Shown here: piece by piece, positions 267-34,070 of the stretch
Layout: every line of letters begins with the position of its first letter
Numbering within the stretch: the first letter of the stretch is position 1
Source of the DNA: Podarcis bocagei
Taxonomy: Eukaryota
DNA: 64,000 nucleotides
Assembly: GCA_964188305.1 (NCBI GenBank)
Contig: OZ076888.1
Strand: one strand, 5' to 3'
The notes under the pieces: generated by a model
The model's database searches: none
What the model was told of the DNA's origin: nothing
Seen by the model: only the letters and a program-made list of their open reading frames with translations
Translations under genes and position numbers: made by a program

Positions 267-14207
<13,941 letters not shown>

Positions 14208-17030: not shown

Positions 17031-20000
17031 CTACAGGATATTCTTTGCAATTGCATTCAGGGTCCTCACTTTAGCCACATCGGCCACCTTGATGGAATAT
17101 TCAGGTGTGGAGAGGTAGGCCCCCATGGTAATGTAAGGGTTTCTAAAAGAATACCAACAAGTCTTTGGTTACTGTCTGGAACCTGGACCTAGAAGAGCCG
17201 GAATGAGAACCATCCTAAGTCCTACCCACTGGGCCATAATCTGCTGTCATATTGCCTTTTGGGTGCTACCTTAACCCATTGCATCTGCAACTATGAACTA
17301 CAGACCCAAGTCTATCCCTAATGCAACAATGCCTGGCTCCCAGCTAAATGCACCTGTCAGGTTCCAGTGCCCCAAATGTTCTTAGTCAAGTTACTACCCC
17401 AAACGGTGGAGCTGCATCGGGAGATGGAAGCAAGGCTTGGGCCCCTCAGTAAGTCAGGATAGAAACTTGCTCAGTTACCTGAACTTCATTCCTGAGTCTT
17501 TGAGTGAGCGCGCTGAGCAGTGAAACTCAGAGGCGCCAGAGCCTTCTAAGATTCTCTGCAGGTTTCTCTCGGTTATGCCTCCCCCTGGTGGAGAGAACCC
17601 ATCACTCAGTCACAAACATAAAGTTAAGCAGGAATAGACAGAGCTACATTCTGGGTCATTAAATAGATGGGGGAAATCCCTTTGCTCTGAACCAGAGGCT
17701 AATCTTTAGGGTCAATGCAGGCTGCACTTGCAGCTCTGAAGCAGGTAGAGCTCCTAAATATGCCTCTGGAAGGGAGCAGATGCCCATCATGTATTATCTT
17801 ATCAGTTTAGCTGCTGATTAGCACTGCTTTTGTTTTGCCTGACAGTTAGTGATCACTCAGGAACACGATAAGGAAACATTAGGTAATGTTCCTTGATGCC
17901 TGGAAATCTTTGCCTTCATAATGCCATACCTATAAGAGTTTGAGGAAGGGACAGATAGGTAGAAGCAAATTGAATTTGGATTGACAGAGGCAAAGAGTCT
18001 ACAGCAGCAAGTTAAGCAGGTAGGGGTTGTGTGTGGGTATCTACACTATTCCTTTAACCTAATGCAGTTTCAGCAGTTGTGCCATCCATCTATTTCTACT
18101 AAGCTCTGTCTGTTTTTATATCTGCAAATAAATAAATATTATAAAGTCTTTCGTGCACTCTCATCCAAAGGGAATTACACCCTAAAGCTCTGTTCCTGGA
18201 CTTCTTGCCACTTGGGCAAGTGTGGCTGCCTAACAACATGCTTGGTTGGTGCTAGAGTTCTGATCTATGCCAACAAGTGGTACTCACTGCAGAGTCTTAC
18301 CTGGCACTACAACAATCCTGCCCTTAGCCTGAAAAGGAAGACAAAATGGGTTTAGTGGTCTTGCTTATAGGAGAAAACACACCAAATGGGTAGCACAAAT
18401 ATTCTGTTAAGGAAGATGTAGAATGTATTTATTTGCAATATTTAATTTCATTTTTTAATGCTGCTTTTCAAATGGTTTGCTCCAAGTAATACTGTCACGT
18501 TGAGTTTCTTACATGCTCTAGGAAAGTATGCTCCCACACTTGTCTATCATTGTGTATATTTCACCTCTGCAAAGTCAAACAACTGAGGATCTACCAAGTT
18601 TCACCTCCATCCTCGGATGGTTGAACTTCAGAAACTATATGCTGCCATATCAGTATCAGCAGGACTGCTTCAACTTCACCCCAGTGTTAGAGACTGGAAG
18701 CAACTTTAAAATAACTAAGCGACTCCTGCGTTGTCTTTTGTCTGTTGTGCATTCTTCTGGACAGGTGTGAGATACGGGTGTGCCATGCGCATATTGTGTA
18801 CTTAACAGAGAAGAAGGGAGCTAATTTACTGCAGTAGCCTATGGGAATTAACACAATACTGAAAGAAGCTATTGTATCAGAAGGTGCAAGGCACAGTTTC
18901 TGTATATTCAATAGGGAGGCCAGTTTTCACCCTGAATCGTTGAAAAACCCTCACCCATCTGAAGACCATGAAAGACTGCTAGCTGACATTTCTCTGCTCC
19001 CACCACACTCTGTCCAGTTCCTTGGATAGCCCACTCTTAAGTAGGCAAGAAAAGTGTATCAGTAGAGTTACAAATTTGGGAGAGATGACACCTCACCTGT
19101 TCTGTCAGTCGTTTTATCAAGGGCAGCCCCTCTAGAACAGTGCTGTCACAGCCACTAGTCAGGACCCGTTCAAAGCCCATCGATATTAGCGTTTCCAAGG
19201 CTGCCAAAGGGTCATAGACCATATCAAAAGCTGCTGAGAAAAATGGAGCATGTCAGTCTTTACTGCCAAATGTTCTGGAAGGCAAATCTACTGACATATT
19301 CCAGGCTTTAGCCTAGTCCCAAATCCCTGGTAGGCAGTCCTAATATGTGCAATTCCCAGAGTACATTCTCATAGTGCCCCCCACCTCACCAAGGTAAGGC
19401 CATTGTGCCTGAGCCTACAGCCTGCAAGCAGGCAGTCCGGCTTTCATTCCCCACTCCAAGCTCTGTAAGAAGAGTCTGCTGGACCTGTCCAATGGCCTAT
19501 CCAGTCCAGCATCATGTTCTCACAGTGGCCAACCAGATGCCCGTGGGAAACCAGCAAGCAGAAACTCACCTCTGTGGAAGGTGACTGGCAGAGGGCGGGA
19601 AGCAGCTGCAAAAAGAACAGATCCCAGATGGTTAGTATACCTTTGCTTAGGGGTTGGCTTTGTGAAGGCAATGCTTCTGCTACTGGTCCTGGAAAGAAAG
19701 GAAACTTCTCCAGATGGTTCAACCAAGGTGGCTGTAGTCATCTGACACCATTTCTGCAATATGGATTCATCATCCTTTCTCATTTCCACTAAGACTGCCC
19801 ACTAGCTAGCTCTTTGTATGGCATTTCTTTTCACATTTTGTGTATCAAACCCCTCACACATGTTGGGCTTATGCACTTATTTTAAAAAGTAATCCTGGTG
19901 TAGACTATAGATGTATCCACTTGTTTCCCTAGGTAGCCTGTGGAATAATGAACCATGGAGTGAATGGATACTGGCTTCTGGTTAAAATAGTTTAGCTGCT

Positions 20001-23000
20001 GTATTTCAGCTTGCCTCACAGAACTTTCCCCACCTTTCCTCCTTCTGTGTGCTGTTCTGGGGGGGGGGGGACATGCAGGAAGAGGACAGGCTTCACCTAA
20101 AGGTAAAGGTAAAGGTACCCCTGCCCGAACGGGCCAGTCGTGTCCGACTCTGGGGTTGCGCGCCCATCTCGCTTAAGAGGCCGGGGGCCAGCGCTGTCCG
20201 AAGACACTTCCGGGTCACGTGGCCAGCGTGACAAGCTGCATCTGGCGAGCCAGCGCAGAACACGGAAATGCCGTTTACCTTCCCGCTAGTAAGGGGTCCC
20301 TATTTATCTACTTGCACCCGGGGGTGCTTTCAAACTGCTAGGTTGGCAGGCGCTGGGACCGAGCAACGGGAGCGCACCCTGCCGCGGGGATTCGAACCGC
20401 TGACCTGACGATCGGCAAGTCCTAGGCGCTGAGGTTTTACCCACAGCGCCACCCATAGGCTTCACCTAGCTAGAGCCAATTTTGGGGGGCATGCAGGGAG
20501 AGGACAGGCTTCCCCTAGCAAGACTAATTCTTCTTCAGAAGATATACTGTCAGTTTCAGTTAAATAGAGAAAATAGCTATTAATTATTTTCTTTGCATTT
20601 TTGAGGGTCCAGAAAAACCATAGTGTTATCATTCTTTCAAAAAAGTTTCCTATTCTTCTGGATAATTCTTCCTTCTGTACAGAACTTATGGCTGCCTAAC
20701 ACTCTCTCCATCAGAGCTGCACAGTGCCCCTTCTTACAAACAAAGGTCACTCATCCCAACCATTACAGCGTTTGGCTCCTGCTTTATCTGAATAATTCAT
20801 TCATTTATGGAATGACCTATGGAATGTCCTCCCTCTAGAGCAGCCTTTGTCAAATTAGCTGGGGCTAATGGGAGTTATAGCCCCAAACATCTGGAGGATA
20901 CCAGCTTGGTGTAGACTGCCCTAGGAGCACGACTGGTGCTAAAGCGCTGTTGTCATGGAATTATTAGCTGGTGGCACTGTATGACAATCACTACTCAAGT
21001 ACCAAATAAGCCCTTTGAAAAGTAAAGCCTGCTCACCCAGCAGTGCTGTGCAGAGCTCTGTATCCACACGTCCATCCTCAGTCAAGGCTCCAAACACCAA
21101 CCCATCAGCCCCATGTTGTTTGGCAAGTCGGATGTCTGCTTTCATCACCTCCACTTCTCGGTCAGAATAGAGGAAATCCCCCCCACGGGGGCGGATCATC
21201 ACAAATACAGGCACCCTTATACACTGCTTCACCACTTGCAAAAGGCCTGCAGACAAACATGTTTGGGACATGGTGTCAGTTTTGTACTGGATTGTTCTAT
21301 GAGTTGGACAAGAAGTGAAACCTAGAACATGGTACGGAGGAACTTAGGAACATAGCAAGATGCCTCATACAAAGGGAGACCACTGAGCCATCTAGGTCAG
21401 TTCTGCCTATGTCTGGAGTAGCCAACAAGATGCCCTCCAGATGTTGGTGAACTACAGCTCCAATCAACTGACCACTGACCGTTTAGGCTGAGGCGAGTTG
21501 GAGTCCAACAACATCTGGAGAGCCACACGTTCCCCATCCCAGAGCTAGACCATCAGCACTGGGTCTAAGAGAAGCAAGGGAGAAGAGAACAGGGCAGATG
21601 TCAAACCCTTTTTGCAGACTTTGGGAGAAGGGGCTGCTGAAGGAGGGAAGGTGAAATAGGGTGATTAAATAACAGCCTGTCTTGCAAAAAGACCAGGAGG
21701 TGCTGATGACACAGAAGAACACAAAAAGAGCAAGCAGAACAACAGGTATTTTCTTTCTGTTCCAGGAGCAGAGGGCCTGGAGGGCAGAGGTCCAAACATT
21801 TCTCCACATTGCTTGGCTGCTCAGTACTGCTACATCTTGCAGAGAAATGGTGGATTGGATCTTGCTTGTATGTGCCAACTCACCTATAGTAGGTGTTGTT
21901 CCTCCTTCCATGAGGTTGGCACACAGTTCAAGGCGGCCAGCACCTGCAACAGGGTCACACATTAAACCTCTGAATATAAGTGGTTTGCAAGATTTTAACG
22001 GAGATCTACATTATGAAGAAACCATGTGGTCCTTGCTATAATCCAACAAGGGAAGTTCGCCCAGCTCCATCATTATATGTCTTTAGCTGCTAGGCAAAAA
22101 CCTTCCTCTAAAAGCAGGCCTTTGGCCTTTAACTATCTGCGGCCATTTAGAAGTGGGTGGGATTTTTTTTAATTATTCCCTCCCTCCTCCCCTTGGTTTT
22201 AATGTATCTATGTTGGGTGTGTTAAGGTATGGGGGTGCTGTTTGTTTGTAAGTAGCAACTAACAAATTTAAGTAATAAATAAAATAAACCAATGGGTAGG
22301 AGTGCTGGAAATTTTCGAGCCAAGAGTGAGATTGGTCACCTGTATTTAGCTTATCCACATAGACTTCAACCCCTACTCATGCAGTAACTAAGAAAGAAAA
22401 TCAATTAATAGGTGATTTGAGTATCTCAGCCCATGTTTTATAATGCACTGCAGCAAAACAGAGCAGGACCACTTAAGTAGTTAAGGCAGCTGAAGACAAG
22501 GCAAGTTGACATTTATTCATTTATTCATTTAAATTTGCAGTTTACCCTACTCTCAAAGGCTAGAGTAATTGGGTTGCAGGCAATTAAAATACATAAATGC
22601 ATATCCTGAATCTATGTGTCACTAACCTAGATCAGAACTTTGGAAGTCTTTACTTATTGACCAGTTTATAACATTTAATATCCTACCTTTCAAGCCTAAA
22701 AGGGTTCATAAAACAGTTTCACACTGCTTGGGGAAGTGAGTGTGCCTCTCTTTTCAATACATATAGCATGTGTACCCAGAGGTGTCCTGGCCTAGAAAGA
22801 CCCCTCAATGATCCTTAAGTATTTTCATCTTCCATCTTTTTTATGGGATTACCTCCTCTCTCTGCATTCACAGCAGACTCCACAGAATCAACACATACTT
22901 CCATGAGAAAGCCATTGGCCATTCCTAGAAGAGAAACACAACCAGAGGTTATGGGGCAATCAGGCTCTGTCTCAGAGACAAGCTCCAGTGCTTTGTCTTT

Positions 23001-24944
23001 TAATTGGCTTCTTTCATCTTGCTCACCCAAGCACATCCACAGCTCTCAGAAACAGAAGCTTCATAGATTCCCCATCACCAGCAACCTTAAAAAGCCTTAA
23101 CCTGTCAGTAGCTGCTTTAAAGGGAACACACAATAAGAACAGAAAACTTGTATCACCATGCGAATTTAAAGAAGAAATCAAGCTTGATCTGTATCAGCTC
23201 AAAACAGGTACAGAAAAAACACATGGGAAGTTGAACACTACTTTTGCTGTAACTCCTGATCCCCTTGCCTTCTTGCTCTCCCTGGATCTTGTTCTCTGTG
23301 TTGCACTGTCTGAACAGATCTGTCTGTCTGTCTATCTATATGTTTATATGTTTGTTTATTTATTACCAAATAAGTCACTTTTCAGCCTGGTCTCCCAGAG
23401 TAGTATACAAAATTAAATAGTAAACATAGAATACCAAATAATTAACAAAAAAGCAACTGTGAAAGTGGCACATACAAAAATCAGCAGACTAAAAACCTGA
23501 AAATTCTAAAATATTTTAAAAGACCTGTGCAATTAAAAAATGTTTATCTGGCACCAAAAAAGAAAAAAAAGAGAAAAGAAAAAAAAGATCAGCACTAGGT
23601 GAACCTTCCAATGGAGAGAATTATAAACCTCCGCTATCCCAAGTCTTCATCAGCTTCATTACTTACAGGGGCACAGGAGAAATTACTTAAAGGGGCACAG
23701 GAGAAATTAATACACTGGCAAGTTTATTCAGTAAGTGGTCCTTAATGTAACTGCATCATTAAAAGAGACTCTTGAACCTGATTTCTGCAGATTAGCACAA
23801 ATCTAAAGTAGAATAAGGGTTTGAAGGGGGGGCTCCAATTTGGAGGATTCAAGGATATGTCACAGCTCCGCGGTAGTGCCTTGTATTCAGAAGGCCACAG
23901 GTTCATTTCCCAGTAAGTCCAAGTAGGGCTAGGTTGTTCCGTTTGAAACCCTGGAGAACTGCTGTCAAGTCAGTGCAAGCAATACTGAACTAGATGGCTC
24001 TATGGTCTGACTCACTTTAAAGTAGCGTTCTACATTCCGAATAAAAAGTCTGTGCTAGTGATCCAGATTTTTCCTCCTTTCAGAATACTAAATTGAGTAG
24101 GGCTGACTTCCCTTCCACCTTTCTCCATATATTTCAGAGGATTCAGGTTCTCCAGCAGGAAGATGAAGTTGAGATGCGTGGGAACAGCTGACAGCAAGGC
24201 CAGCCTGTAACTTGCAGAGTCTCCCTTAGGCAAATGCAGAACTTACTCTAGAAACTCCAACAACAGATGGAACTTTGGCCAGTAACATAGTGCATTAAAT
24301 GTGCATTCTGTTCTTGACGTCCTTTGTTATGCTTTGTTTTGAAATCTTTTAAGGTAATGTTTTAGTTTCCTATTAACTCTGTCGCTTTGAAGGTATACTT
24401 TATATTTGTTTTTATTCCATTATGTTTTATTCAGGATTGCTTTAATTGATGCTTCAATGTAGCTTGTAAAGCGCTTCAACTCCCCCCTTAAAAATATAGA
24501 AATTAAATAAATAAATACGCAAACAAGCAAGCAAGCCCCAGTGAGTGCAGGCAAGATTGCAGTCCTCAGGCCTATAGCTAGAACCCTGCAGACGCTCACC
24601 TGAGAATAAGGACCCCTTTGGACTCAATTGGGTTTTACGTTTTAAACACAAAGGCCTGATATGTAAAAATGCCAATAAAATCTATCCCACTTGGTTTTGT
24701 TGAATGCACATTGCGGTCGTGAGTGTGCACAGGGCACCCCCCCCCCCGCCCCAGAACAACAGTATTAAAATTTCTGGCTCCTCTTGCATCTGTGGAGGGG
24801 GAAAGGGAGGCCTTGAAGCCGCCCGGATTTCCGCCCCCGCCCAAGGGATTCCTCGGGATCCCCGGCGCTTCCTTCCGGCCGTCCCCCCGCCCACTCACCC
24901 TCACACCCTTCTGCCAGGCCCTGCTTCCGGTCCCATCTCCTCAT
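17031..24944 (-). CDS. CUTC: Copper homeostasis protein cutC homolog, 9 exons, about 267 aa
   Basis: Exons: 24899-24944, 22853-22924 (GFLMEVCVDSVESAVNAERG), 21884-21943 (RLELCANLMEGGTTP), 21037-21246 (VFVMIRPRGGDFLYSDRE), 19570-19605 (LPVTFHR), 19097-19230 (AFDMVYDP...RVLTSG), 18301-18328, 17479-17584 (GGGITERNLQRIL...EFHCSAR), 17031-17142 (…AIAKNIL*). The exon 1 start codon is the least certain part. Minus-strand AATAAA at 16747-16752. Confidence 0.95.
20100..20456 (-). mobile_element. Sauria SINE (reverse orientation) in CUTC intron 4
   Basis: Reverse-complement homolog of 2669-3036 with (AAAGGT)n tail. 12-bp TSD AGGCTTCACCTA at 20088-20099 and 20457-20468. Confidence 0.9.
23860..24030 (+). 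mobile_element. Decayed tRNA-derived squamate SINE
   Basis: Box-B-like GGTTCATTTCCC and GAAACCCTGGAGAACTGCTG…CAATACTGAACTAGATGG body. Related fragments at about 56980-57090 and 30055-30125. Confidence 0.5.
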
Positions 24945-25206
24945 TCCGCCTCGGGGCCGCTCTGGAGGCGCGGCGGATGTCGGCAGTTCTGCGCCAAACC
25001 AGCCCTGAGCTGAGGAGGAAGCCCCGCCCACCCCTGGGGCCTCGGCTCCCGCGCGGCGGCAGCGGCGCACAAGCAAGAGGAGGCGCCGTCCTACCTGTCA
25101 CGTGGCGTCGCGGTCACCGAGTGCGCGGTCGCGGCGTTTCCGGAAATAGCTCGGATTTCTTTCCGTGTCAAGAGCGAGTCGCTTCCGGGTTGCAGCTTGA
25201 GGAGCG
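24945..25206. promoter_or_regulatory. Bidirectional CpG-island promoter shared by CUTC and COX15
   Basis: Start codons are 262 bp apart, head-to-head, in GC/CpG-rich sequence. E-box GTCACGTG at about 25097-25104; ETS/GABP-type TTCCGGAA at about 25138-25145 and CTTCCGGG at about 25182. Confidence 0.85.
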
Positions 25207-28200
25207 ATGCTCTTGCGGGCGGCACTAAGAGGGTCTCGGTTCTTGCTGGCCCCACGAGGAACGGGGTCCCCCGGCCAGGTACTCCAGGGGCGGCGCTTGG
25301 TTTCCATAGCAACGGGGACCGGGTCAAAGATGCCTCTTTATCGGCCGAGGGTTGCAAAACGAAGCCACCCCCGGCGGCTCCTCGTTTCTTAGCCTTGCGA
25401 GCAGGCTGAGTACCTGCTATCACCCTCGCTAAGACACGCTGCTGGGGAAAATGCCAGGAGTTTCCGCCCTTATGCATCCTTTGCACTGTGGGAGGTGCTA
25501 ATCAATGCTACCTCATTTCTACGTGGGGACCTCTAATTATGGGGTGATATTCAAAAAAACTACAGACTCTATTGCCTGCACCTGTCACAACCAGACACGT
25601 TAAAGGGGGCAGACTGAAGACTAGGAGTTTCGGTGACTGCCAAAATATTTCACTTGTATAACCACAGCAAGCCCTCAACCTATGCAAGCCCTCAAACTAT
25701 GCGGGGTTACATTCCAGGAATCATGCCTAAATCAAAATTCACATATCATCAAAACACATTAGGTTCAATGGCAGGTGGGATTGCCAAAGTCTTTTTCCCT
25801 GGACGCTTGTCCTCTTTTTAATTATGTTTTAATTTGCCAAGCGCATATAGCTAAATGTGCACCAGTTAAATGTGTAAGTCTCTCTCTAATTTTAACAATA
25901 GGTGTAATGCTTCATAGTTTTAAGTATTTTAGTATAGGCTTTTTTTAAAAAAAGAGTAGTGTCTACATGTTTTAAACAAATAAAATAACAATTATGAATG
26001 TAACATCACATTTTATTACATGGTCACAGGCCCTGTAAAAACACGAACACTTTCCCCTCCATATGCTTTCAGCATTTAAATAGCATATGAAAACCCTACT
26101 GGATCACACTTAGAGTCCATGGAGTTCAACCTCTTTTTGCTAATGGTGGCCAGCCAAGTGCTTCTGAAGATTCCACAAGCAGAACGCTTAAGAACATATT
26201 GAAAATAAAAATAAGTTTTGCTGAGCATCTCAGTGAATAGCTGTTGACATTCCTGTTGTCCAGTTTTTTTGTGCTTGCACCATTGATGATCTGGTCCTTT
26301 ATCCTTGTCCTTGTATTTTGTAGAATAATGTCTGGCACTTAATACAACCTTTCTGATGTAGTGAACACAGGTGTGAACTCTTTACGGCAAAGAGAGTTCA
26401 TTCATCTTGAGTAATGCTCCTCTTCCATGTCATGAATTGCAAATGTATGTTTAGTGGGGTGGCATAATTATAAACAGCCTCCTCACTACCTTCTCTGTCC
26501 TCAGCAATGTCAACGGTGGTGGCAGCTCCCACAGAGACGGTCACAACACAGTGTAGTGTCAGAAGTTGCTTCCCATCCCAGAGTGGTGGTACCACCTGTC
26601 CCCAATGCTGTGACCAACCGGGCTGTAGGGCGCTGGCTTCTAATATGCAGTGGTACTGTGGCCGGAGCTGTGGTGTTGGGTGGTGTCACTAGGTAAGGAA
26701 AATTAGCACCTCCTCTTCAAGCCTTTGCTATATTTTATTTACCTTTGACACTATGGTTCTCCAACTGTCATAGATTGTATCTTTCTGCAACCAGCAGAGA
26801 TCTTCCTAGGGGCATTGCTTCCTCTTGGTCATGCCAGTGTGTGGGCCTAAACTAACTTCTGGTATCTCTCTGCCCTTTGAATGCCTGTGTCTACGCTTAT
26901 TTTATAAATGCATTGTAGATAAACAATGCAGGCAGTAAAAGAAAGGTGGGATTAAAGGGTAACAAATAAATACTTTTTGTACTTACAGTCATAACAACCT
27001 TTTGAGGTATGGTAGTTAATTTAGACTATTTCAGAATTTAAAAGGTGTGATTGCATATATATTTGCATCTAATTGATAACCGGTATGTTTGTGTGTAGTC
27101 AGACTTTGCATCTGCATTTGTGTCTGAATTTTCCCATTGTGGCTTCATTCTGCTTTTCTAGATAGATGGATACACATGCACACACCATTATATCCCACAT
27201 TGATAGCATCTTCCCTCAATGGTGTGTCATTGCTGTTCTTTCCTTCTCAGGCTGACAGAGTCTGGGCTTTCAATGGTTGACTGGCATCTTGTGCGGGAGA
27301 TGAAGCCTCCTCGGACACAGCAGGAGTGGGAAGCAGAATTCCAAAACTACCAGCAATTCCCAGAATTTAAAATGTATGCATGGGTTGAGCTAAAGTTCCT
27401 AGAGACTAAAATTAAATTTGGGGGGGGGGGGGAGAGCCTATTCTACTATCCCAGCAAAAGGGAAATGAGAAAAAAAGAGTATCTTGAATGCTACTTCTTG
27501 ATAGAACTTGTCATGGAAAGGGGAATGGGCAACTACACCTTACTGCAGGGTTTGTTGTTGTTTTGTAAACCTTCTCTCTGAATCTAACAGCCTGAACCAC
27601 AACATGACGCTGACAGAGTTCAAATTCATCTGGTACATGGAATATTCACACCGAATGTGGGGACGGCTTGTTGGACTGGCTTACATCCTTCCTGCAGCTT
27701 ACTTCTGGAGGAAGGGTTACCTCAACCGGTCCCTGAAGGGTCGTGTCGTTGCCCTCTGTGGACTTGTCTGTTTCCAGGTGGGAAAGATCACTGGGATCTT
27801 GTAATTGTTAAATGAATCATTAAATTACTCTGCCCAAGATAACTGAGATAGAACACGCTCCAGGAGCTGATTTGTATGTGATCGTAGGTCTCTGGTGCAC
27901 AGAAGCTTCAGATCATGGTGCTTGGAGTGTTGTTAGATCTTAGTTCCTTGAAAGAGAATGTACATGATATTGGCAAGAGCAAAAGTGGTCTTAGTTTCAT
28001 GCCTCTATGGTACTTTTTCTTTGTTTTGGCAGGGCCTATTGGGCTGGTATATGGTAAAAAGTGGATTAGAGGAAAAGCCAGACTCTCATGATATCCCACG
28101 GGTCAGTCAGTACCGTCTAGCCGCACACCTGGGCTCTGCACTTGTTCTTTACTGCTACAGCCTGTGGACTGGACTCTCATTACTGCTGCCGCAGCACAAG

Positions 28201-31200
28201 GTAAGCAAAAAGTGAGGCAGACTGGGGGCATGTATTGAGTCCCAGTTGGGCCAAGAAAGCCTGTACACCAATTGCGCCTTTGGAGGGAGGCACACTGCCA
28301 CTGTGCAGACCAAACTGCCACTGTATCCTACATGTGCTCAGCCTGGAAGAGGAAAATTACAAATCTTGGGAAATGTCAAAGAGATAACGTTCCTAGAAAC
28401 ACCACCAAAGCTTACCAGTCAAGAACTCTGTTAGCACTGACACTCCCATGCATAGAGGGAGCCAATGAACTTGCAGTGGGAGGCACACACTCCTGCATCA
28501 CATGCAAAACTAGCGCCTGTTGCCAATTCTCATATTAGGTAGGGTTTCACTTCTCAGGTAGGGTTTCCAATCCCTTTATGGTGATCACAGCCACTGCTTC
28601 GGAGCATCACATGAAAAGGGAAGAAAGGAGAGCCCACACAACACTGCACCCTCATAGTTCACTTGGTAGGATGGCCTCTTAAGAGGGTAGTTATTTAAGA
28701 AAGCATAGCAGGAGAAATGCAGACTGAGAAGAATTCAGCCTGGCATGAGCTATTCCATTTCTTACAGTGCAGTCTGCCACAACTTCCCCAGTTCTAGCAA
28801 GGCCGCATCCTTGCCACAGAAGATATTGCCATGCACTTTTGCCCTACACATCCAGGCAGTAGATGCTTCTGGGGCCTGTGGATCTGGTCTTGGGGATGGC
28901 GACTTGACAATAGGATTAAATCAAGCATGCAGATGCTATCTGGCTGCTTCCAAGAACGCCTGGTGATTTCTATAAAATTTGGTAGATTTGGGTTCATAGA
29001 TATAATTGGATGTAAGCCATGTCCATTAAGGGCTGTGCAGCATAACAGCTGAGTGAAAAGAGCAGAAGTCCTTGCTGCCTTAGCCATTGAGAGTGAAATA
29101 AATACGTTCCTCTTCTGTCAGGAGTCTTATTGGAAACGTGTATATATGCTGAGCCTATGGAACACTAGTTTCCTTTGTACATACTCCCTTTAGAATACCG
29201 TATCTTTTGCACCATAACACTCACTTTTTTCCTCCTAAAAAGTAAGGGGAAATGTCTGTGCGTGTTATGGAGGGAATGCCTACGGGTGGCATGCCTACAG
29301 ATTTTCCTCCTCTAAAAACTACGTGCGTGTTATGGTCGGGTGCGTGTTATAGAGCGAAAAATACGGTATATAAAAAGGCCATTGCATATTCTTGTGATCC
29401 TCCTGTTTTGACAGTTACCAGAAACCCGTCAACTCCTGCGCCTAAGAAGGTTTGCTCATGGAACATCAGGCCTGATCTTTCTCACTGCCCTCTCAGGTAA
29501 AAGTCCCTGTCACTTTTGCACCAATCTCTTTCTTTTGAGAAGCAATAGACAGCATGGTCATGGATATGTGTTTCTTGCTTCATTTCCCATTGGGAGGGTC
29601 TAGACTTTTTCAATTCCAGGTTACTGAAATGCTTCCTCTTCATGCTGGTCAGACAACATCACTGGGAACTGTTTTGTGGCCTTGAGGGAAGGACCTAAAA
29701 CTCTCACCATGATGGTTTTTAGGTGGCTTGTTCTATTACATTCATATTTACAAGTGTGACAGACTCTCTTCTCTGGAACTCTAGGGGCATTTGTGGCAGG
29801 ACTGGATGCTGGTCTTGTATACAATTCATTTCCCAAGATGGGGGAACGCTGGATCCCTGATGATCTCCTTGCCTTTTCCCCAAAGTTGAAGAACGTATTT
29901 GAGAATCCCACAACCGTGCAGTTTGATCACAGGATTCTGGTATGTTTCTTCCTCTTTATGCTCTTAGATAACACCTCTTTTTTAATTGGTTGCCGTTCTT
30001 GGGTTTGTGTTCATTCCAGGTGGCAGTGTAACTGGGAATGTGGGAATGCAGGCCCCTTAACTCAGAGTAGAGCACTTGTTTGCATGCCTAAAGTACTGGT
30101 TTCCATATCCGCTGTCTCTAATTAAAGGGTGCAAGTTACAAAGGGGGGGGGGGTTAGTCTAAACATTAAGGAGAACATCATGATGACATGAGTTTTTTGA
30201 AAGAGGAGCAGACTGTCCCAGAAGTGATGGACTCTTTTTCAGAGGCTGGATTGTCAGGGATGCTGTAGTAGTGAGGTTTGTGCATTGCCTTTGAACTAGA
30301 TGACCTTTTAAGATCCCTTCCAACTCCACTTCTAAGCCCTTTGTTGTCATTGCAAAGCTTCTCTGGTTCCCTCACTGGATATTTACTCTTTTCCCTTTAG
30401 GGAGTTTCCTCTGTTGCAGCCATTACAGGTCTGTACCTGTTTTCCAGGAAGATTCCTCTCCCACGGAGGACAAGGATGGCAGTTGCTTCCTTACTGGCTG
30501 TGGCATACCTCCAGGTATTAACTATGCCCTTTAAAACACCCTTTTAATTGTCACTTAGTAGTGTCCTCTGATGGCATAGCAGGTTTCCCCTTCCTTCCAG
30601 GTAGGTGCCTGCCTTCTCGTCACTGATAATGCTATCTTGGTTGCTGGTCTCAGGCATTTAAAACTGAAATTGGTGGGGACCAATTTTTATTAATTTATTT
30701 ATTTGGCTTTGACGAACAAAGGGGGGAAATAGAGCTGCAGTCGTGCTCTTCTGTGGAAATATTGCACAGTGCTATGGTCACTGCCCTTCTCTGCCTTCTG
30801 GGTTTAAACTGAGAAGGCAAAGGGGGAACATCAGTACAGTTTCATTAGCATTTTATCATGAAGCACTATGACAGCTACCTCATCCTGTAGCAGTGGGAGA
30901 GAGACAGAACATATAAAAATCCCCATACCAATTGCTTATGAAGCTTCTTGTGTATAATTCTGTGCTATAAGAATACGATGCAGATGTATTTGCACATACT
31001 TCTACATTTCAGGTATACTGGTAAGCAAACTTTGCTTACGTCTGTAACTTCATTTTATTCTTGCTCCTCTGCAGGTTACCCTGGGCATCAGCACACTTCT
31101 CCTATATGTCCCAACTCCTTTAGCAGCCACTCATCAATCAGGTTCCCTGGTACTGCTCAGTGTGGCGTTGTGGCTGATGCATGAACTGAAGCGGATCCCG

Positions 31201-31206
31201 AAATAA
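25207..31206 (+). CDS. COX15: Cytochrome c oxidase assembly protein COX15 (heme A synthase), 9 exons, about 406 aa
   Basis: Exons: 25207-25278 (Arg-rich mitochondrial presequence [17 protein letters not shown]), 26505-26692 ([10 protein letters not shown]), 27251-27373 ([11 protein letters not shown]), 27591-27777 ([17 protein letters not shown]), 28033-28200 ([13 protein letters not shown]), 29415-29496, 29785-29939 ([16 protein letters not shown]...VQFDHR), 30401-30514, 31075-31206 (ATHQSGS...KRIPK*). AATAAA at 32198-32203. Confidence 0.97.
29198..29366. mobile_element. Short Tc2/Kanga-like (TcMar) MITE
   Basis: Termini CCGTAT…ATACGG with a TA TSD. Both arms are homologous to the ends of the 45863-47051 element. 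Confidence 0.75.
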
Positions 31207-31282
31207 CCCTGCTTCCCTATTTAGCCAGCCTCTGCTAGTGCTGAAGGTTCACGGTTGCTGCCTTTGCCCCTCGTGTGGTATG

Positions 31283-31739
31283 TGTTAGGATATTAGATGT
31301 TAGGATATTTCCGTTCCACCTTAAAAGGGAGCAGGCTTTGTGGGCCCATAACCTTGTTGTTGGGAAACTGCCAGGGAGATATTGTCCATCATGGCCCCAA
31401 GCCGGCTGCCGGACGTCCATCGATCTCCCGTAGACAGGCAGAACCAGCAGCTAGCGACACGAAGCCTCAGAAATAGATTGGCTGCATTCCGGGGCTTGTG
31501 CACACTGATTATCAGCAGTGACCACAGCCAGAAAGCTTGCACCGCAGAAGAGCATATTTTACAGACTTTATTTAGCGTTGAACAGAACAAAAGAAAACAT
31601 GACCGTTCTGTGTCAGTGGCTCTGACCGACTGAAATCGAAAGGAACAGCAAGCATAAACATCCTGTGAACAGGACATGCGCAGACTCTGTAACTCACAAA
31701 GCCTGCTCCCTTTTAAGGTGGAACGGAAATATCCTAACA
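31283..31739 (-). mobile_element. Ty1/copia-type LTR plus primer-binding site fused to an inverted copy of its own terminus; 45-bp TIRs, 5-bp TSD
   Basis: TG…CA termini; TSD GTATG at 31278-31282 and 31740-31744; perfect inverted repeat 31298-31342 / 31695-31739. Minus-strand LTR about 31355-31739 with AATAAA at 31567-31572, followed by GGTTATGGGCCCA (31341-31353). Confidence 0.78.
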
Positions 31740-33559
31740 GTATGCTCCTCTTCCTGAAAGCCTTAATTTGAACAGAAGGCGAGGCTGAGCAGCACCTTGA
31801 TGTCATGAGTTGAAGTGCTTTGTTGCAAAACTTGGGGAACATGAATCACCATCCTTTGCTTAAGGTGTGATGTTGACAAGGTGGGCTCTGGCAAGAATGA
31901 TGGTTGCTTGAGGTGTGTCTCGCTTCCTGCTGAGCTATCTGTATGAGGCTACAGCCATGAGCCTTTTACATTCTTTGTAGGCTTGATATAGACAATGGAT
32001 TATGGGGTGAGTGGGCCTAGAAATTTGGATGAATAGCAAATGAAGGCATTTCAAAACTGTATTATAAGGGTGATGGGTGGCCTAGTTTGTGGATTTTCTT
32101 TAGCAGAATGGGGTTTGAGTGCAATTTTTTGCATTAGAATATTGAAATGTGCACTGTAATTTAACCATGCAGAAGACCCACAGTCCTTTCCTTATTTAAT
32201 AAAAAAAGTTTCTCAATATTTCTCAATATCTCAGTATTTTAAAACTGACTGTTCTTACAATGTCCCTATGCAATGTACCTTCATAAGAAACTGCTGCAGC
32301 AAACCAAAGGCTCCATTAAGTCCATCATCTTGTTCTCAGTGGCCAACCAGATGCCTGTGGTAGCTTTCAAACAGGCACATGAGTGGGTTGATTTGGAACA
32401 CGTTTCATTAACATCAATATCCACAAAGGATTTTTTCTGGGGAGGGTGGGGGGGAGTAAATGCTGCAAATGAGTAAATAAACATAACTAGCAGCAGAGAA
32501 CATATCTAACAATTCTGGTGGATCAGGTGACTTCCTAGACTTGGGTAGACCCCTGAGAAACTTGTATTACACATTTATCCCTTTCCTTCTCAGTGGGTTG
32601 ACCTGCTACAATGTGTAGATGGCTTTTCACTCAGTGCTGATTCTTTCCTGGGCAGTGCTGCTACACCCAACTTCACAGTCTCCCACTTTGCTTCATTTCC
32701 CTAAAAAGCCCTATCATGTACCCTACAATTCAGAGTTGTACTACACTACTGCGGTTCCCTACCGCTGCCTCCCAGCAAAATGAGCCTAACATGGAATCAG
32801 CCCCAGCCCAGCCTGCTTCAATATAGGTATAATTATGCAAGATTGGCAGCAGAGTATCCTTTAAAGTGTTTGCAGATGCTGGGAGGGACATTTTTTGCTA
32901 TGAAATGTGACTTTGAAAGATGATGGACTACTTACTGTCTTTGCTGCTACCTTTTTCTTTTATACATTACTTGCCAGTATTGGATATCTGACTTGTTTTC
33001 AGTGGGGTAGCATTCACTTCACTAGTAGTGAAGACCGGCATTAAAGGCTTTAAACCAAACCAAGAGCGGAGACACAGGTGTTTCACTCAAGTATTAAATT
33101 GGCTAGATCTAGTTTCCTTAATGTCATCCATTGCTTCATTCATTAGGTAGAAATTCATTAGGTAGAAATCAATGAATGCGCTTAGTGAGAGCCAGGATAC
33201 TGAGAGGGGATGGGTGTCAGAAGAAGGAACTGATACTGGTTTCTATGTAGTAGTAATGTTGCAGTAATGCAACATTTTTATACATAACATCATATTCGTA
33301 AAATTTTCTGATCAGCTTGTTTTCTGTACACCAGTTAGAGGAGTTTTTGTATTTTTTAAGAGTTATAGAAATGGCCTAAAATGGATAGAAACTCTGAAAG
33401 GTTGGAGGGGTAAGTCTTCTCACAAAATCAAGGTGGAGATTGGTGCCTGCACATTTTTGTTCATATCTGGGTCTACAAATTCTATAACCTTTCTGTAGAG
33501 CGGGGCGGGGGGAATAGAAACCTGTAAATCTGGTGATCATGGCTCATTAGAGGGAGCAA

Positions 33560-34070
33560 CTACCCCAACCCCGGCGGACGCCTATACGATGCCCTGGCCT
33601 GCAACGATTCGAGTAAGATTCGACCTGCCTTCTCCGCTCCTCACAATACACCCTCCGAGGCAGCAGGGGGCGGTACGACACAGGCAACTCCATTCGGAAC
33701 TGAGGCTCCAAAATACGGGGTCGCGAAGGGGGAAAAACACCGGGAGGGCGCACGGAATTCTGATTGGTTGCGGACCGGGCCAGAAGCGAAGGAAGCGACC
33801 GGCGGAGGGGCGGAGACTCACTCTTCTTGCGGTCTCGGCGGCGGCGGCTTCTTGTCCTTCATCCCGTCGGTCGCTCCCAACCTGCCTCGCTATGACGGCG
33901 CACAGCTTCGCGCTGCCGATCATCCTCTTCTCGGTCTTCTGGGGGCTCGTGGGAATCGCCGGGCCGTGGCTCGTGCCCAAGGGGCCCAACCGCGGGTGAG
34001 GCTCCCCGCCCGCGCAGCCACTGCCTTCCCGATCCATCGCAAGGTCTCACGGTCGCCATCGCCAAATAGA
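33560..34070 (+). promoter_or_regulatory. CpG island and promoter of ATP6V0E2
   Basis: CpG-dense stretch surrounding exon 1, with an inverted CCAAT (TGATTGG) at about 33761 and a GC box at about 33807. Confidence 0.75.

Follow-up and report, generated by a model that had tools for sequence, protein, structure and literature searches.

A Ty1/copia-derived insert with two U3 ends downstream of the COX15 stop codon in Podarcis bocagei, probably a by-product of reverse transcription

The 64-kb stretch of Podarcis bocagei DNA analyzed here (the window) contains a 457-bp insert (31283–31739) lying antisense to COX15, with TG as its first and CA as its last bases. It is bounded by a perfect 45-nt inverted repeat (31298–31342 and 31695–31739), and most of its length is a single long terminal repeat (LTR). 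This raises the question of how an LTR came to be framed by terminal inverted repeats (TIRs), and whether the resulting unit belongs to a mobile family or records a single event. A sequence-only reading of the window had described the 457-bp insert with its TG...CA ends, perfect GTATG duplication, 45-bp inverted repeat and 12-bp end copy, and all of these were confirmed.

Anatomy and site of the insert

The features of the insert and its surroundings are collected in Table 1. Neither the inverted repeats nor the target-site duplication contains a mismatch. One LTR is present, and the opposite end consists of a 45-nt inverted U3 fragment plus 15 nt, with neither a 3' R region nor a polypurine tract anywhere in the insert. 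Between the LTR and the left GTATG lie 75 extra bases, made up of a spacer, the primer-binding site, the inverted U3 arm, AGA and the 12-mer TGTTAGGATATT. This outer 12-mer would be the end actually used by integrase on the left side, and the AGA behind it may be left over from the last bases of the polypurine tract in the parent element.

Table 1. Features of the insert, its host gene and a related element (window positions unless a locus is named)
Feature	Position	Strand	Basis or remark
Last coding exon of COX15, stop TAA at 31204–31206	31078–31206	+	Translation, Pfam, tblastn
Left target-site duplication GTATG	31278–31282	none	Single GTATG at the orthologous site in five lacertids
Outer 12-nt U3 terminus TGTTAGGATATT	31283–31294	+	Identical to 31298–31309 and reverse complement of 31728–31739
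3-nt all-purine spacer AGA	31295–31297	+	Separates the two TGTTAGGATATT copies
Inverted copy of U3 nt 1–45, left inverted-repeat arm	31298–31342	+	100% complementary to 31695–31739
Primer-binding site GGTTATGGGCCCA	31353–31341	-	Complements initiator tRNA-Met nt 27–39 (anticodon stem-loop)
Spacer ACAA, LTR to primer-binding site	31354–31357	-	LTR end placed by P. raffonei 3' LTR homology
Complete copia-type LTR, 382 nt, TGTTAGG...CCCAACA	31358–31739	-	77% identical overall to the 393-nt LTRs of the P. raffonei element
Right target-site duplication GTATG	31740–31744	none	Perfect 5-bp copy of the left one
Intact Ty1/copia element, 5231 bp, COX15 intron	L002:13623–18853 (P. raffonei CM049754.1)	-	LTRs, ORF domains, duplication

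The LTR most likely ends with ...TCCCAACA at 31358, as judged by homology to the 3' LTR of a relative in P. raffonei and by the duplication adjoining it. The sequence-only reading had called one minus-strand LTR of about 385 bp. The single LTR and its strand held, and its end was 3 nt off, giving 382 nt. The one base formerly placed between LTR and primer site (after ...AACAACA) gave way, on the relative's LTR end, to the 4-nt spacer ACAA. An AATAAA lies at LTR position 168 (31572–31567). Beyond the primer site the junction reads ...GGTTATGGGCC[CA]CAAAGCC..., in which CA is common to the 3' end expected of strong-stop DNA and to the inverted arm. The last two bases of the arm thus overlap the primer site as a CA/TG microhomology, in agreement with the earlier proposal of a switch via CA into the inverted U3 end directly after the primer site.

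Searches within the window returned the insert alone. Neither TGTTAGGATATT nor GGTTATGGGCCCA occurs elsewhere in the 64 kb, the remainder of the window has no significant blastn match to the insert, and Rfam and tRNA scans of the insert region found nothing. A scan of the 24-nt U3 terminus against metagenome contigs gave 0 matches. A chance ORF of 173 aa (31321–31842, minus strand) stays open through the entire LTR and was not considered a gene.

Orthologous loci were next compared. COX15 exons were searched singly, with no spliced model, and full-length lacertid COX15 proteins led to loci in Podarcis muralis (L001), P. raffonei (L002), Lacerta agilis (L003), P. lilfordi (L004) and Zootoca vivipara (L005). 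The sequence-only reading had suggested looking for unoccupied alleles with a single GTATG, and the site was empty, with one GTATG, in all five (in P. muralis, ...cacgtgttGTATGctcctcttcc...). In each locus the left flank (to 31282) and the right flank (from 31740) adjoin with a 5-bp overlap, and the flanks are collinear with the five relatives right up to the duplication. Because the flanks abut at the empty site in every relative, the entire 457 bp is a single insertion event with a 5-bp duplication.

Over the compared region (19000–34000), the window is 96.7% identical to P. muralis across about 14 kb, 93–94% identical to P. lilfordi and P. raffonei, and about 91% identical to L. agilis and Z. 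vivipara. Since the insert is missing from every relative compared, of which P. muralis is the closest, the insertion evidently postdates the split from the P. muralis lineage. When the exon-4 ORF of the window was used in a word search, nothing came up beyond short Logan contigs (the closest at most 2 kb), which stop short of the insertion site.

The host gene is well defined up to its stop codon. Its last exon carries a Pfam COX15-CtaA match at profile positions 292–321 of 322 and is ~96% identical to the C-terminus of Podarcis COX15 (tblastn). The insert starts 77 nt downstream of the stop. No AATAAA or ATTAAA lies between the stop and the insert, and the first plus-strand poly(A) signals after the stop are at 32198 (AATAAA) and 32476. 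Because no poly(A) signal intervenes, the insert likely lies within the COX15 3' UTR. The sequence-only reading had given this placement as a fact; the distance and the uninterrupted stretch bear it out, and the UTR itself is best called probable. The insert contributes no AATAAA or ATTAAA in the COX15 sense. Read in that sense, it would form a predicted 47-bp perfect RNA stem (MFE -183 kcal/mol, z = -9.3), which this housekeeping gene would then carry in its probable 3' UTR. Any effect of this stem on the editing or stability of the COX15 transcript is a matter of speculation.

Three further observations concern the window as a whole. Genes are ordered CUTC (-), COX15 (+), a small ATP_synt_H-family gene (+) and a GDA1_CD39 (ENTPD-like) gene (-), as in the annotation of the relatives. 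Positions 8300–8442 are 143 N, either a gap in the assembly or masked sequence. At 45.8–47.0 kb, numerous long ORFs overlap in every frame, a pattern that fits a repeat array.

Copia ancestry of the LTR and primer site

An intact element in a COX15 intron of P. raffonei provided the reference for the LTR of the insert. Its LTRs are 393 nt each and one base apart, and its 3' LTR ends ...CCCAACA, adjoining the target duplication CTTTT. At that site P. muralis, L. agilis and the window (28834–28840) have no insertion. The ORF of 1391 aa carries, in order, Retrotran_gag_2 (27–104), Pol_BBD, rve (516–616), SH3_retrovirus and RVT_2 (914–1156), the order typical of Ty1/copia. An exact look-up of the polyprotein in the protein collection returned no record. 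The element looks very young. COX15 has been struck independently by related copias in two Podarcis species.

The insert LTR matches both P. raffonei LTRs at 75–77% identity over about 400 nt (blastn E about 1e-68). The first 38 nt are identical, and conserved blocks farther along take in the AATAAA region as well as the U5 end. The polypurine tract of the relative ends ...GGGGGAGGA (..GGA) immediately before TGTTAGG. The insert spacer AGA is all purine and has its final GA in common with this tract, and the blastn match extends 2 nt (GA) into the spacer. The P. raffonei element represents a related family and is not itself the parent of the insert. No parent element, taken as one with an LTR >95% identical to that of the insert, was found among the loci compared (the window and the five lacertid loci).

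The primer site was equally informative. Its 13-mer GGTTATGGGCCCA is the exact reverse complement (13/13) of human initiator tRNA-Met nt 27–39 (UGGGCCCAUAACC), using the human sequence given in PMC12775451, and it also falls within the zebrafish anti-iMet probe printed in PMC11417395. The complementarity to the anticodon arm of initiator tRNA-Met predicted by the sequence-only reading thus held when 31341–31353 was aligned. The P. raffonei copia has GGTTATGGGCCCAG at the equivalent position, matching tRNAi-Met at 14/14 bases, with the site 3 nt past the LTR in the relative and 4 nt past it in the insert. Drosophila copia and yeast Ty5 are known to prime from a tRNA anticodon loop (PMC10886601). 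The insert accordingly carries what reads as a hemivirus-type (half-tRNA) priming signature.

Homology of the LTR to that of an intact copia, together with the primer site common to both, settles at the level of sequence comparison that the LTR and primer site of the insert are copia-type. The copia origin claimed earlier is thereby borne out, with the homologous LTR found on an intact gag-IN-RT element. The termini agree: the insert LTR, TGTTAGG...CCCAACA, conforms to the copia consensus TGTTRNR...YAACA (PMC3601003), and the 5-bp duplications of Ty1/copia elements are seen as GTATG at the insert and CTTTT at the relative. The insert has no second, direct LTR, no internal region and no polypurine tract. 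Because there is a single LTR and the other end is an inverted U3 fragment, the insert is a Ty1/copia derivative and not, structurally, an LTR retrotransposon. Nor is it a solo LTR, given the 75 bases beyond the LTR. A perfect 45-nt TIR (with 12 nt of it at the extreme left end) and a 5-bp duplication do give it the outline of a MITE.

That outline invites a cut-and-paste DNA transposon of Ginger2/TDD-like or Transib-like type, with no link to copia, as the source. The ends agree with TGTNR, the length of the TIRs is 45 bp, and TDD-4/5 make 5-bp duplications (PMC2836005). However, the interior consists throughout of a copia LTR and a tRNAi-Met primer site and has its homologue in an intact Ty1/copia element, and the inverted part spans only 45 nt and is itself the U3 end. 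Metazoan Ginger2 duplications are 4 bp at RTATAY targets, and within the Ginger2/TDD group 5-bp duplications are made only by the Dictyostelium TDD-4/5 (PMC2836005). The Ginger2 alternative, which the sequence-only reading had named as its own possible undoing, fails on both duplication length (5-bp GTATG) and TIR origin, and we regard a DNA transposon as scarcely credible here.

A second alternative takes the insert as a full-length copia insertion later rearranged by inversion and deletion, or takes the inverted junction as an assembly artefact. Related full-length copias do insert into COX15. Rearrangement would, however, need a breakpoint exactly at the boundary of element and flank, since the inverted U3 terminus abuts an intact duplication. 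A missed adapter would give long palindromes, not a 45-nt arm followed by a 12-nt re-copy, and both the precise ends and the collinear flanks described above speak against an artefact. Either version of this explanation is very unlikely.

A proposed origin in aberrant reverse transcription

The anatomy is best fitted by an error of copia replication. We consider it probable that the insert is a dead-end by-product of Ty1/copia reverse transcription that gained a second U3 terminus and was inserted by integrase. The earlier proposal, in which template switching gave a product with U3 at both ends that integrase then inserted, stands as the best-fitting account.

Among the normal intermediates, plus-strand strong-stop DNA alone runs from U3 nt 1 to the primer site, and a full U3 beside U5 and the primer site exists at the DNA stage only, no RNA form having U3 upstream of R-U5-primer site (PMC6894440, PMC7197481). 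The event would have started from such a strand, comprising a complete U3-R-U5, the short spacer and 13 tRNA-complementary nt. The normal second jump would have been missed, and the 3' end ...GGGCCCA would have paired through its last CA with TG at U3 positions 44–45. The putative template is the plus-sense U3 of another plus strand, possibly a short one with the last purines of its polypurine-tract primer still attached. Extension to the 5' end of U3 would add an inverted copy of U3 nt 45–1. Copying would then continue for 3 nt (TCT, the complement of AGA), either on a template with a remnant of the polypurine primer or on genomic RNA. One further jump would add U3 nt 12–1 and restore a clean ...CCTAACA-3' end. 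Were the partner a short nascent plus strand, mutual extension would give a blunt duplex directly.

The double-stranded product would carry TGTTAGGATATT at both ends. Read inward, the U5 terminus is TGTTGGGATACT in the P. raffonei relative and TGTTGGGAAACT in the insert; it agrees with the U3 terminus TGTTAGGATATT at 10/12 positions in the relative and at 9/12 in the insert's own LTR. Because the natural U5 terminus is this close to the U3 terminus, copia integrase would meet a near-normal pair of ends. It would then insert the U3/U3 molecule 77 nt past the COX15 stop with a 5-bp duplication.

Three other routes were considered and set aside. Autointegration links the U3 terminus to a site inside the molecule; here the terminus faces outward and the internal junction falls at U3 nt 45, positions that fit polymerase run-off and not autointegration. 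Intramolecular snap-back alone yields one duplex end, and a concerted 5-bp insertion requires two. A simple tandem duplication of the 12-mer is at odds with the bases after the two copies, which differ (AGA versus TCC).

An explanation that keeps the copia ancestry and dispenses with the accident is an amplifying, non-autonomous, LTR-derived TIR family of MITE-like type, repeatedly moved, for instance by copia integrase acting on U3 ends. Perfect TIRs ending TGT...ACA and a 5-bp duplication are what such a family would show. Against it, no second copy was found in the 64-kb window or in about 135 kb of the five lacertid loci. A protein word search with a 128-aa chance ORF across the LTR gave no hits, and none came up for the 173-aa ORF either, which counts as weak evidence. 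The extra TCT and 12-nt tail also resemble a one-time accident of the polymerase.

The mechanism raises a further difficulty. To our knowledge, retroviral-type integrases join cDNA ends and never excise integrated DNA. Without a 3' R and a polypurine tract, the insert would in addition have no normal route through reverse transcription. Because integrase cannot excise and these sequences are lacking, a MITE-like family is mechanistically unlikely, and overall we judge it improbable. We likewise find it very doubtful that the insert is an LTR-derived TIR element able to move again, a living intermediate between LTR retrotransposons and Ginger-type transposons. By our preferred account it would be unable to do so, and a single dead-end event is most likely.

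Aberrant strong-stop products are already known from yeast experiments and defective HIV proviruses. What the Podarcis locus adds is a rare, clean fossil of such a replication error in a vertebrate germ line, in which single-base detail survives for each of the two junctions, for the bases derived from the tRNA and for what may be a remnant of the polypurine tract. If the by-product account is right, copia integrase has acted in vivo on a substrate bearing U3 at both ends, and the insert marks a half-tRNA-primed copia lineage recently active in this Podarcis lineage. It would also mean that a single replication error suffices to make a TIR-bounded unit out of an LTR, a point relevant to the relationship between LTR elements and Ginger-type transposons.

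Comparison with known systems

Among known systems, the composite elements of yeast Ty1 are also products of the copia superfamily. In Ty1, strong-stop DNA that stops 2 nt beyond the primer site builds up as a dead-end product, and such molecules have turned up attached to foreign DNA through template switching, as 'composite elements' (PMC2939329). Any fragment with TG...CA ends can be inserted by Ty1 integrase, with duplications of 5 bp (PMC2939329). The dead-end strong-stop DNA and composite elements of yeast go back to Lauermann & Boeke 1997 and Kiechle et al. 2000. As in the account proposed here, an intermediate ending at the primer site with a few tRNA-complementary bases is joined elsewhere at 0–2 nt of homology, and TG...CA-ended DNA is inserted by integrase with 5-bp duplications. 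The Ty1 composites differ in coming from transformation experiments, often in repair mutants, with Ty joined to plasmid DNA. In the Podarcis insert, by contrast, the partner is the element's own inverted U3 end, two U3 termini result, and the product is fixed in a vertebrate germ line.

The insert has several features in common with Drosophila copia and yeast Ty5: a primer site for the anticodon stem-loop of initiator tRNA-Met, not for its 3' end (PMC10886601), TG...CA LTRs and a 5-bp duplication. Both of these are whole elements that have gag-pol and a pair of direct LTRs, whereas the insert has one LTR, is noncoding and has no polypurine tract.

Aberrant second-strand transfer is documented in defective HIV-1 proviruses, where plus-strand DNA that misses the jump guided by the primer site switches elsewhere and gives rise to defective integrated copies (PMC12657518). 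In contrast to the Podarcis insert, the outcomes there are deletions or tRNA read-through insertions within two-LTR proviruses, and none of the cases in that report is described as a single LTR with an inverted U3 end (PMC12657518). Aborted strong-stop products also occur in plant VLP DNA (PMC7197481).

Solo LTRs and the TRIM, LARD and SMART groups share with the insert an origin from LTR retrotransposons, a lack of coding capacity and flanking duplications. A solo LTR is the LTR alone, and a TRIM-type element has two direct LTRs with a primer site and polypurine tract. The Podarcis insert differs from both in consisting of an LTR, a primer site, an inverted 45-nt U3 end and a 12-nt re-copy.

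Ginger1 and Ginger2 come closest to the notion of a 'TIR element with LTR-type ends', having TIRs that begin TGTNR, an integrase-like transposase and short duplications (PMC2836005). Unlike the insert, they encode their own transposase, contain no LTR or primer site and make 4-bp duplications in metazoans (PMC2836005). No transposase or family is linked to the Podarcis insert, whose inverted ends are those of a copia U3.
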